A DNA stretch of 64,000 nt from assembly GCF_003704095.1 (NCBI RefSeq), contig NW_020844976.1, positions 124,001 to 188,000 of the forward strand, written 5' to 3'. This document shows positions 36,384 through 39,014 of the stretch, one piece after another. Position numbers and translations under genes: made by a program. Positions within the stretch are counted from its first letter, which is position 1. Every line of letters starts with the position of its first letter. The DNA is from Pocillopora damicornis. Taxonomy: Eukaryota. Below the pieces are notes generated by a model that was not told the origin of the DNA, ran no database searches, and saw nothing but the letters and a program-made list of their open reading frames with translations.

Positions 36384-39014
36384 ATGGTATCATATGCATC
36401 AGAATCAGTCCTTGAGAGCTGCCCAGCTTTTAAAGATGGCTGTCCTTATTCTAAGATTACACAAGACCTTTTTGTGGAAGAAATCAAGAAATGCCCTGAG
36501 TTCAAACAAGGGTGCCCCTTTAAGAACACAGACAATGTAAAGGATATCCTGAAAGAACTTTCCAAGATGCCAGAGATAAAACATCACTCAGGATCAACAC
36601 ATGAACATCTACTTAACATGCTGAAAGCCATTCACACGGAGTCTAAAAAGCTGGAAGAGAAGGTTGGAGAGTGTCCTGCATTCAAGACAGAGGAAGGCTG
36701 TCCTTTCAAAGATGCCAGCAAGGAAGGAAAACCTTTGATAGAGCCACCAGCAGCTGTGTTAGAAGGTTTTACTGCCTCTGATGTCAGTAAACTGAAGGAG
36801 AAGTGTCCTGCTTTCAAAGAAGGGTGTCCATTTGCCAACATGGATAATGAAGTTCTTTTGGAAAAAATTAAGAAATGCCCTGAGTTTAAAGAAGGATGTG
36901 CCTTCAAAGAAGCCAAAACAATCAAAGAGATCTACAATAAGCTGTCACAGATGCCAAGCAGTGACAAGGACTGCCACCATAAAGAAGCTCTGATGGAGAC
37001 CATGAAAGTCATTCACAGTGTTGGCCATGAGAAAGCTGACAAGTGTCCAATCCTTCTGAAGGATGGTTGTCCATTCAAATCTGTTGAGAGTGAAGGAAAG
37101 CCACTTTTCAGTCCAGCAGAATCTGTATTGCCCTCAGAGTCTGAGTCAGAAGAGCCTTCTACCCATTTTGTTAACCTCAAGGATTTAAAAGAAACTTGCC
37201 CAGCATTTGCATCTGGATGTCCATTTGCAAAAGTTGGTGATAAACAGTTGGATGAAGAGCTGAAACAGTGTCCTGAATTCAAAGATGGATGCCCTCATAA
37301 GGACAGTGAAACTATTGGAGATATTTACAAAAAGCTTGCCAGTCTTCCATCCTTCTCTGTGCAGGGATCACATGGTGCTAAGCTCGTAGAAATTTTCAGG
37401 TACATACATGAAGTGTCCAATGGACTGAAAGAGGAAATGGGTGAGTGTCCCATATTTGCAACGGTGGAAGGATGTCCATTCAAGACTGTCTGCAGTGACG
37501 GCAAACCACTGGTTGACAAGCTGGATGGTCAACGTTGGACCAAGATTTTCCAGAGTTCAATTGATGACATCAAAGAAGATGTCAATAAAGAAATTGAGAA
37601 AACAGAACCATCTATTCATCTGTCAAAGGAGTTGAAGAAAGGCACCAAAGTTATCCACAGAGAAGCAGAAAATATTCACTTTGTAAAGGAGTTTGCCAAG
37701 GGAAGGATTGAGAGACAGTGGTATAAAGAACTTTTGGCTGATCTTTACTTTGTGTACAGGTAAGTTCTATACCTGGTTTATGTAAACCTGTTGTAATTAC
37801 GGCTGCTACATTTTCTCAGGACACTCTACTTTCCACCCAACCTCTCCCCTCTTAATTCCTATCTAGGATAGAAACATCAATGTGGGGTTGTTGTGATCCT
37901 TCCTATTGTCATTCCGCAATGAAGATTGAATTTTTCTTTAATTGCTTAGTGTTGACTGCTGTGTATGGCAGCCATTGTTATTTTCATCTCAAAATTTAAT
38001 AAATTGTAGAGGACTAACATTAATGAACAGGGAAACATACAGAAAAAGATTTTAGAAATTTCGATCCATCTTGTAAAAGTGCAGATCAAAATAACAATAT
38101 CTAGAGATATATTGTGAGCCCAAACCTCTACTGCATGCCATAGAGTTATAGCAAATCATTTAATAGGTGTTTGCAAGGGATTTCATTTGCAGAATTTTAC
38201 TTAGTAGGCAGACAACCCTAAGACTGAGTTACAATGCCAATTGTATCACTGCTAATTACCCTCTCCCCCTTTCTATTTCAGAGCACTTGAAGAAGAGAGT
38301 GAGAGACATAAAGATCATGATCTGTTCAAAGCAGTGCATTTTCCTAAAGAGCTTGGTCGTTTGCAGTCCTTGGAAGAAGATATGGAGTTTTATTTTGGCG
38401 AGGAATGGAAGGAGCAAGTTCCAATGTCTGCAGCTACAAAAGCCTATGTTGACAGAATCCATGAAGTAGCTGACAAGGATCCAGCTCTGTTGATAGCTCA
38501 TCATTACACCAGGTACCTGGGGGATTTGTCAGGTGGACAAATTTTAAGAAAAATGGCCACTAAAGCTATGGATCTCCCAAGTACTGGAGAAGGAGTGCAC
38601 TTTTATGTCTTTGATAACATTCCTGATGCTAAGAAGTTTAAGAACAAGTACAGATCCTGCCTTGATGAACTCAGCATTGACAAAGTGAAATCAGATGAGA
38701 TTGTTAAAGAAGCAAATTATGTTTTCCTGCTCAACATTCATTTGTTTCAAGAGATAGATGATATGGCTGGATTTGAAGATCAGGTTACCAAGAAGAAAAA
38801 GAAGCTGACAGTTGAAGAGGTTTACAGTAGCATTGACACCAGTAAAGATCAGGCTCATGGGGTGTGTCCATTTGCAGTCATGGCCAAAAAACCTGCACAA
38901 GGAAACACAACAGCTCCAAGAAGTGAAGGAAGGAATGTTCATCCAGTGCTTCTGGCAGTAATTATTGCAATTGCAGCCATTCTGCTAGGGCTGGTGTTCA
39001 CCAAAATAATGTGA
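36384..39014 (+). CDS. HMOX: Heme oxygenase with a large N-terminal Cys-Pro repeat array; 2 coding exons (36384-37759, 38282-39014), about 702 aa
   Basis: Proximal-His helix LSKELKKGTKVIHREAENIHF, then YKELLADLYFVYRALEEE, FPKELGRLQSLEEDM, AHHYTRYLGDLSGGQIL (HO signature), a C-terminal CPF motif and a hydrophobic tail anchor VLLAVIIAIAAILLGLVF. The phase-2 intron 37760-38281 (GTAAGT...TTTCAG) joins the two ORFs in frame. A splice acceptor at 36374 implies an upstream exon. Confidence 0.95.
36420..37520 (+). repeat. Protein-coding repeat array: three ~128-131 aa super-repeats, each with three twin Cys-Pro motifs
   Basis: Units start at ~36420, ~36804 and ~37197. Motifs: CPAFKDGCPY, CPEFKQGCPF, CPAFKTEEGCPF / CPAFKEGCPF, CPEFKEGCAF, CPILLKDGCPF / CPAFASGCPF, CPEFKDGCPH, CPIFATVEGCPF. 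Each unit ends in (E/D)GKPL. Confidence 0.95.

Follow-up and report, generated by a model that had tools for sequence, protein, structure and literature searches.

Three Cys-Pro- and histidine-bearing units precede the heme oxygenase of the coral Pocillopora damicornis and recur in distant eukaryotes

The present analysis concerns a 64,000-nt window (the whole stretch of DNA that was analysed) of contig NW_020844976.1 in the Pocillopora damicornis assembly GCF_003704095.1, in which a heme oxygenase (HO) gene on the forward strand encodes, ahead of its catalytic domain, an array of three repeated units built on paired Cys-Pro (CP) motifs. All positions are in window numbering; the window is eukaryotic, has a G+C content of about 37%, and contains no N. 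The 3′ end of a non-coding exon (5′ untranslated region) lies upstream at 35480-35511 (+), where a donor site (AG/gtaaat) and a match to an RNA consensus were found. Coding exon 1 (36375-37759, +; acceptor tatag/GATATC, donor TACAG/gtaagt) begins translation at the ATG at 36384, encodes the three units and then a linker, and runs 47 residues into the HO domain. The corresponding open reading frame (ORF; 36384-37763, +) is 459 aa long, and its final 47 residues open the Pfam Heme_oxygenase domain, with PF01126 matching residues 412-458 over profile positions 2-48 (E 2.3e-11), which places the start of the catalytic domain at 37617-37757 (+). H425 (37656-37658) sits there within TKVIHREAEN and is presumably the proximal His, following the ligand assignment of mammalian HO. 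A GT..AG intron of 522 nt in phase 2 follows (37760-38281, +), supported by the sequence and by RNA contigs that skip it, and coding exon 2 (38282-39014, +), assigned from Pfam and translation, carries the rest of the HO domain (ORF 38334-39014, PF01126 E 6.9e-52), a single CPF motif (AHGVCPFAV, 38865-38873), a short linker, a hydrophobic tail anchor (38937-39011), and the stop codon, so that both a canonical HO catalytic domain and a C-terminal membrane anchor are present in the product.

Upstream of the ATG at 36384, the frame holds a stop codon and then no further ATG up to the exon end, and the N-terminus of the array is hydrophilic. Given the lack of an upstream in-frame start, this hydrophilic N-terminus, and the C-terminal tail anchor, the protein is predicted to be a tail-anchored HO whose N-terminal 380 residues face the cytosol. 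The genome holds a single HO locus, and the array therefore belongs to the animal's only heme-degrading enzyme. Exon 1 was found in 18 public sequencing runs from ten studies, ten of which are on record as RNA. Transcription was checked in four RNA runs from four studies using assembled contigs, which show the joined form and not the level of expression; in all four runs, a contig leaves out precisely the 522 nt of the intron and runs on into and through the HO exon. In three of the four, the loose ends before 36373 share a 30-letter consensus with an exact match at 35480-35509. The three-unit array is transcribed in frame with HO.

The units are 110 to 115 residues long and occupy residues 7-121, 135-244, and 266-379 of the protein. 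Each has the same order of elements: a twin-Cys motif, a 15-residue spacer, a second twin-Cys motif, a helix ending in LxxMP, a loop bearing His, a long helix ending in (I/V)H, a third twin-Cys motif, and GKPL. Unit 1 (36402-36746, +) has its twins at 36420-36449, 36492-36521, and 36672-36707, with loop His residues H67, H68, H73, and H75 (36582-36608, +) and a helix-end His, H84 (36633-36635, +). Unit 2 (36786-37115, +) has twins at 36804-36833, 36876-36905 (the second Cys followed by Ala), and 37044-37076, a loop containing C197, H198, and H199 (36972-36980, +), and the helix-end H211 (37014-37016, +). Unit 3 (37179-37520, +) has twins at 37197-37226, 37269-37298, and 37446-37481, a loop His at H330 (37371-37373, +), the helix-end H342 (37407-37409, +), and an extra Cys, C370. 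The His positions of all three units were assigned from translation and alignment. The nine twin motifs read CPAFKDGCPY, CPEFKQGCPF, and CPAFKTEEGCPF in unit 1, CPAFKEGCPF, CPEFKEGCAF, and CPILLKDGCPF in unit 2, and CPAFASGCPF, CPEFKDGCPH, and CPIFATVEGCPF in unit 3, with an internal spacing of C-x6-9-C. The remaining elements recur as EEIKK, EKIKK, and EELKQ in the first spacer, LSKMP, LSQMP, and LASLP at the end of the first helix, HHSGSTH, DCHH, and GSH in the loop, AIH, VIH, and YIH at the end of the second helix, and EGKPL, EGKPL, and DGKPL at the end of the unit.

The preliminary description had placed this repeat at 36420-37520, which runs from the first Cys (residue 13) to residue 379, and had read it as a Cys6-His2 domain with twin-CP motifs throughout and a spacer of about 11 residues between the first two twins. 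The order of elements it gave was recovered in full in every unit. Its twin-CP wording holds for 17 of the 18 motif Cys, which are directly followed by Pro, and fails at C172, which is followed by Ala; the spacer between the motifs measures 15 residues instead of 11. An array-only paralogue on the reverse strand contributes two further full units (55939-56283 and 55570-55899, within the ORF at 55471-56364, identified by translation and alignment), and a MAFFT alignment of these with the three HO units bore out the claim that six Cys and at least two His hold their positions: C7, C14, C31, C38, C91, C100, H62, and H78 are invariant in all five copies, as are P57 and GKPL. No CC, CxC, or CxxC occurs in the 380-residue array, and the gaps between the twins within a unit, 15 and 47-51 residues, recur in most of roughly 20 orthologues; because of both, the repeat pattern, judged from sequence, is not a product of chance. 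The array (residues 1-380) is rich in Lys (13.7%) and Glu (12.1%). Arg is nearly absent from it (0.3% over 36384-37523) and Trp is missing altogether, and Arg is used in the HO part of the protein.

Conservation among orthologues follows the unit boundaries. Over 15 orthologues, mean column conservation was 0.78-0.84 in the units versus 0.59-0.67 in the linkers, and 15 of the 19 insertion columns within the array fell in linker 2; among the roughly 20 orthologues, the linker between units 2 and 3 varies from 41 to 54 residues while the spacing inside the units stays fixed. Hydrophobic positions are conserved with helical periodicity. As a measure of selection on the units, Ka/Ks (nonsynonymous over synonymous substitution) between HO units 1 and 2 and the paralogue units was 0.17 and 0.39, respectively.

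Relatives of the unit are widespread. A word-indexed search returned 133 relatives, and an exhaustive profile search of 1.84 billion representatives returned 211 matches at E ≤ 0.001, 101 at E ≤ 1e-10, and 14 at E ≤ 1e-30. Among the 150 matches listed, 80 had at least one full unit and 44 had at least two twin motifs without a full unit, and at least eight were large TIR/AAA_16 proteins that are described at the end and not counted as family members. An HO domain was present in 114 of 252 fetched proteins, and the unit lay N-terminal to it in 113 of these 114; one full unit was found in 66 HO proteins, two in ten, and three in 18. Where the relatives with HO had a C-terminal tail of at least 30 aa, Cys-Pro occurred in that tail in 61 of 74. 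The sources include the anthozoans Desmophyllum, Stylophora, Actinostola, Actinia, Dendronephthya, and Xenia, the dinoflagellate Durusdinium, the oomycetes Aphanomyces astaci and A. invadans, and the Amoebozoa Balamuthia, Planoprotostelium, and Physarum. In the oomycete HO, the elements (...IPASH...FIHDxS...CPVF..CPFKT...RSW) stand in the order of coral unit 3. HOs of the Balamuthia and P0075 type have two twins, a linker, and two further twins instead of two twins, the hairpin, and a twin. Because its internal spacing is fixed while the linkers vary, and because it recurs N-terminal to HO in distant eukaryotes, the unit appears, with moderate confidence, to behave as a discrete domain rather than as scattered heme regulatory motifs (HRMs).

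The commonest module across the family is a twin, 11-16 residues, and another twin. Counting runs gave 222 runs of two twins, 16 of three, and two of seven, along with arrays of 4, 8, 10, 12, and 20; run lengths are mostly 1, 2, 4, 8, or 10, in a set in which many sequences are fragments. Proteins of the Planoprotostelium and Physarum type (P0054, P0064, and P0067) carry arrays of 11-20 twin-CP motifs arranged in super-repeats of four twins, without the helical hairpin, and one twin in arrays of this type has His in place of its first Cys (HPAFAAGCPY). GCAF, in which the Cys is kept and Pro is replaced by Ala, occurs in 44 units, including those of a sea anemone and stony corals.

The motifs also occur outside an HO context. 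P0043, a 418-aa eukprot transcript, runs from three units straight into a CP motif and a hydrophobic tail anchor, without an HO domain; by its sequence, it looks like an HO-type protein minus the catalytic core. The F-BAR and RhoGAP protein P0205 (Gonapodya sp., 836 aa) carries at its C-terminal end genuine twin-CP motifs accompanied by IPQIH and IPETH loops, and the module is therefore not restricted to HO.

Ligand conservation was assessed in three sets of units. In 253 units defined with a hidden Markov model (HMM), the helix-end His was kept in 227, some loop His in 228, both in 221, one only in 13, and neither in 19; all six Cys were kept in 217, all six Pro in 142, and five of the six Pro in a further 44. 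In 86 HMM-selected single-unit proteins, the helix-end His was present in 80, the loop His of P-x-S-H in 59, and each of the six Cys in 82-86, although in both sets the HMM also rewards Cys. In 146 units defined by a regular expression, the helix-end His was present in 141 and at least one loop His in 140, and a Phe two residues past the first Pro and an F or Y after the second CP were present in all 146; Cys counts in this set are circular, since its units were chosen by a Cys expression. The near-invariant helix-end His sits 10-13 residues ahead of the first Cys of the third twin. The loop His occupies a fixed column within this coral and drifts in position across the wider family. The 19 units without either His belong mostly to one subfamily with the loop motif DxCKGK and a variable helix-end residue. 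With both His present in 221 units and both absent in 19, the two are mostly kept or lost together, a co-loss that rests on one or two subfamilies and not on many independent events. The His positions are thus largely conserved among homologues, and the "His2" of the preliminary description stands for the helix-end residue and is loosened for the loop residue, whose position varies, and for the one subfamily that lacks both.

Single units were modelled with AlphaFold2. Unit 3, run with 33 sequences, reached a mean predicted local distance difference test (pLDDT) score of 69.1 and a predicted template modelling (pTM) score of 0.56, and unit 1, run with 91 sequences, reached 74.5 and 0.61. Both models have the same topology: the chain makes short turns at CPAF, CPEF, and CPxF, one helix occupies the spacer, another spans 46-54, and a long one starting at position 65 bears the invariant His. 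No stretch falls under a pLDDT of 50 in either model, so that disorder is not predicted, and no residue reaches 90; the twins 1 and 2 of unit 1 stand at about 80 without any ligand in the model. These models suggest, with moderate confidence, that the unit folds as a mostly helical domain, and the earlier view of a discrete helical domain, as opposed to scattered HRMs, agrees with the conservation of units over linkers, the architecture in distant eukaryotes, the His conservation, and this predicted topology. The CP motifs are placed in short turns between helices in blocks with pLDDT values of 65-82, which fits the placement in a "loop joining two helices" given by a survey of CP motifs (PMC10377097).

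The domain family is unannotated: Pfam has no entry for it, none of its structures has been solved, and we found no paper on it. Among the exon products, the named relatives, and 91 family members searched against Pfam, only HO passed its cut-off; over the 91 members, any other family matched at most six times and any one zinc-finger model at most three times, always below threshold. The zinc-finger models concerned (zf-TRAF_2, CCCH types, Sina, and C2H2) all stayed below their gathering cut-offs and did not match the window's units. The 4Fe-4S family Fer4_11 gave E 0.031 and 14.9 bits versus a cut-off of 26.2, and its CxxCxxCxxxCP motif is absent. The nearest approach was made by P0061, a sea-anemone protein of the DxCKGK subfamily, to DUF2284 (PF10050; 25.1 bits versus a cut-off of 25, E 1.7e-5), with no single stretch passing alone; two other DxCKGK members scored 19.1 and 17.8 bits, a fourth gave no match, and neither did the coral HO units. 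Sequences in the PDB compared with the unit profile gave a best E of 0.092. Foldseek on the two models gave best E values of 3.4 and 5.2, which are not significant, VIA-align gave best Z values of 4.1 and 5.2, rated by the tool as common arrangements, and the ESM Atlas returned no usable match to unit 1; a missing fold match is no proof of a new fold. A literature search for the domain itself and for Cys-Pro arrays in the HOs of cnidarians or protists found no paper, with most subscription journals outside its coverage. The family may be a variety of the Cys-Pro heme regulatory motif, and it may be a new cofactor-binding fold.

As possible chemistries, the preliminary description had listed heme ligation, two Zn-type sites, an Fe-S site, and disulfides, without choosing among them. 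We tentatively favour, at a strength just short of calling it probable, the reading that the unit is a discrete cytosolic helical domain that binds ferric heme through a Cys thiolate and His. HRMs have a Cys-Pro core followed by a hydrophobic or aromatic residue, and the array has both, with CPAF, CPEF, CPIF, CPIL, CPF, CPY, and CPH at its motifs. On this reading, the Cys-Pro-aromatic motifs would coordinate heme iron through their Cys thiolates, in the manner of classical HRMs, and a sixth ligand would come from the conserved His pair of the helical hairpin. The three copies stand ahead of the coral's only HO, which would be held at the endoplasmic reticulum (ER) by its C-terminal tail, and they would trap labile heme and deliver it to the catalytic pocket. 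As with the HRMs of mammalian HO-2, the array might be switched off by thiol oxidation or might tune activity. We infer this heme binding, its ligation geometry, the hand-off, and the redox gating. The reading is favoured by the motifs, the mostly retained His pair, the predicted fold with its CP motifs in turns, the place of the unit N-terminal to HO in the relatives, the Cys-Pro in the tails of many of them, the genome's single HO locus, and the predicted cytosolic face of the array. The precedent is HO-2, whose HRMs take up heme on the Cys of Cys-Pro, "often" together with a distal His, and assist its loading into the catalytic site (PMC8808069; bioRxiv 10.1101/2020.06.21.163881), form a thiol/disulfide switch at -200 mV (PMC2742820), and lower HO-2 activity in vitro when heme is bound (PMC11900463). 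Peptide work likewise describes a CP motif that recruits heme and a nearby His that then receives it (PMC10377097).

Several observations weigh against heme binding. The motifs lie at fixed spacing in a predicted fold, unlike single HRMs in flexible regions, and the confidence of that fold is only moderate. The potential ligands come in fours (twin and twin; His, His, and twin), and HOs of the Balamuthia type put a further pair of twins in place of the His hairpin; tetrahedral metal sites therefore fit better than independent heme sites. Cys is kept in the 44 units where Pro is lost, Cys and His are exchanged at motif positions in the Physarum-type HPAFAAGCPY and in the DxCKGK loop, where a Cys stands for the loop His, and six heme sites within 115 residues would be sterically crowded.

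These points are gathered up by the strongest alternative, which we consider a real possibility and yet somewhat doubtful, namely that the unit is a domain that binds metal at two sites of four ligands each, a Cys4 site from twins 1 and 2 and a Cys2His2 site from the two hairpin His and twin 3, holding a structural Zn ion, Fe, or an Fe-S center. Possible roles of such a domain are the docking of a partner such as a reductase, the acceptance of Fe(II) released by HO, or an electron relay. Eight conserved potential ligands per unit, the prevalence of the twin-spacer-twin module and of even-numbered arrays of 4, 8, 10, 12, and 20 twins, the substitution of a twin pair for the hairpin, the Cys/His swaps with Cys kept where Pro is lost, the relatively high pLDDT of twins 1 and 2 without a ligand, and the faint Pfam resemblances below threshold to zinc fingers and, in P0061, to DUF2284 all argue for it. 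It is, however, at odds with the absence of CxxC or CxxH metal knuckles in the 380-residue array, where the spacing is C-x6-9-C, with the lack of any metal-binding Pfam family passing for the coral-type unit and the few matches to families other than HO over the 91 members, and with the failure of both models to match a solved Zn or Fe-S fold; simple metal ligation also leaves the near-invariant Pro and aromatic residue after each Cys unexplained, and runs of odd length, with three and seven twins, occur as well. A broader version, which we regard as rather unlikely, would make the twin-CP unit an ancient, pan-eukaryotic, and unnamed fold that came with ER-anchored HOs long before HO-2, its Cys4 and Cys2His2 sites serving as a heme-parking or iron-uptake relay and its free copies as soluble buffers.

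It is improbable that the array is a flexible string of independent HRM-like peptides with no stable fold, in which AlphaFold2 over-interprets short helices. The modest mean pLDDT of the models, with no residue at 90, the high Lys and Glu content, and the lack of a match to a known fold would suit such a string, but the spacing within units is fixed where linker lengths vary, the conserved hydrophobic positions recur with the period of a helix, two units have a pTM above 0.5 with no stretch under a pLDDT of 50, and the whole unit is conserved from corals to oomycetes. Least probable of all is that the Cys serve as a cofactor-free redox buffer or switch, twins or neighbouring twins forming disulfides under oxidative stress that would alter HO activity or partner binding, since, although an HRM Cys pair of HO-2 forms a physiological disulfide switch (PMC2742820) and the C-x6-9-C spacing could close small disulfide loops, this leaves the conserved His pair and the invariant aromatics unexplained and is at odds with an array predicted to face the reducing cytosol.

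The heme reading invites comparison with mammalian HO-2, which is likewise tail-anchored in the ER and bears Cys-Pro-Phe motifs; a single CPF also stands immediately ahead of the anchor in the coral HO. HO-2, however, has two single C-terminal motifs in a flexible region between core and anchor, where the coral has the one CPF at 38865-38873, and the 18 motif Cys of the coral protein lie N-terminal to the core, as nine twins in three predicted folded units with a conserved His hairpin. The HRMs of HO-2 are described as an amniote innovation (PMC2742820), whereas the coral arrangement also occurs in protists. Among the heme-sensing regulators, yeast Hap1, Bach1, and the ALAS presequence resemble the array in having several Cys-Pro motifs in one polypeptide and in sensing or binding heme. 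Their HRMs, in contrast, are single, irregularly spaced, and in regions regarded as flexible, and none forms a repeated 115-residue unit or is fused to HO. On the metal side, a small and in part helical module with eight Cys and His ligands would suit two Zn ions, as in TAZ, CHORD, TRAF-type, and CCCH modules, and a helix-terminal His with a Cys in the loop that follows resembles TAZ sites; the coral units differ from these in lacking CxxC and CxxH knuckles and in reaching no Pfam cut-off, and the TAZ1 structure 1l8c gave a Foldseek E of 8.4 and a TM of 0.23, which is noise. DUF2284, labelled a "predicted metal-binding protein", is approached only by the divergent DxCKGK relative P0061.

These results touch on two open questions, the route by which heme reaches HO and the exit of the released iron. 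The only HO accessory elements that have been studied are the two HRMs of mammalian HO-2, and the association of Cys-Pro motifs with HO long predates HO-2 and extends well beyond it, with the fusion present in corals, oomycetes, dinoflagellates, and amoebae. In reef corals, where the symbiont lineage has this fusion too, the domain bears on the handling of heme and iron under oxidative stress. A conserved, compact, and expressible domain would also be a tractable system for HRM chemistry inside a fold.

Within the window, the HO gene and its paralogue may have exchanged sequence. Between the HO gene (36402-37115, +) and the paralogue (55471-56364, reverse strand), Ks was 0.90 for unit 1 and 0.21 for unit 2. 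RNA contigs break at 36708-36817, where depth rises, in the stretch most like the paralogue. The low Ks of unit 2 relative to unit 1, together with these breaks, suggests gene conversion between the two genes over unit 2.

Searching the genome with the unit profile gave 21 exon-sized matches, five of which are the window's own units and 16 of which lie on four other contigs: nine on C3172 (229412-289287), five on C2425, and one each on C3714 and C1417 (loci L006-L010). The copies that were translated belong to a tandem, divergent subfamily with one unit per exon, in which twins 1 and 2 are intact, twin 3 is degenerate, the loop His is missing, and most copies retain the helix-end His. A TGA is present in each of the two weakest matches. 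This family resembles the sea-anemone DxCKGK proteins P0051, P0058, and P0061.

Some profile matches lie outside the family. Kinship with TIR/STAND proteins was considered because the profile matches large TIR/AAA_16 proteins down to E 4e-24, and the alignments show a different 24-residue repeat (QPQFADKCPWEKL), which was excluded because each copy has a single Cys and lacks the first Cys of the twin. These proteins (P0137, P0170, P0187, P0189, P0195, P0213, P0249, and others) have TIR and/or AAA_16 (STAND-type) domains, are 1000-1800 aa long, and end in a C-terminal run of QPQFADKCPWEKLxGxDW repeats, which may reflect either distant kinship or convergence. Bacterial OmpA and TSP_3 matches were set aside as well, as they are not twin motifs. 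Between the HO gene and the paralogue, an ORF with an exon-like appearance (45206-45724, +) matches the GH3 family central domain (PF23571, E 1.8e-18).

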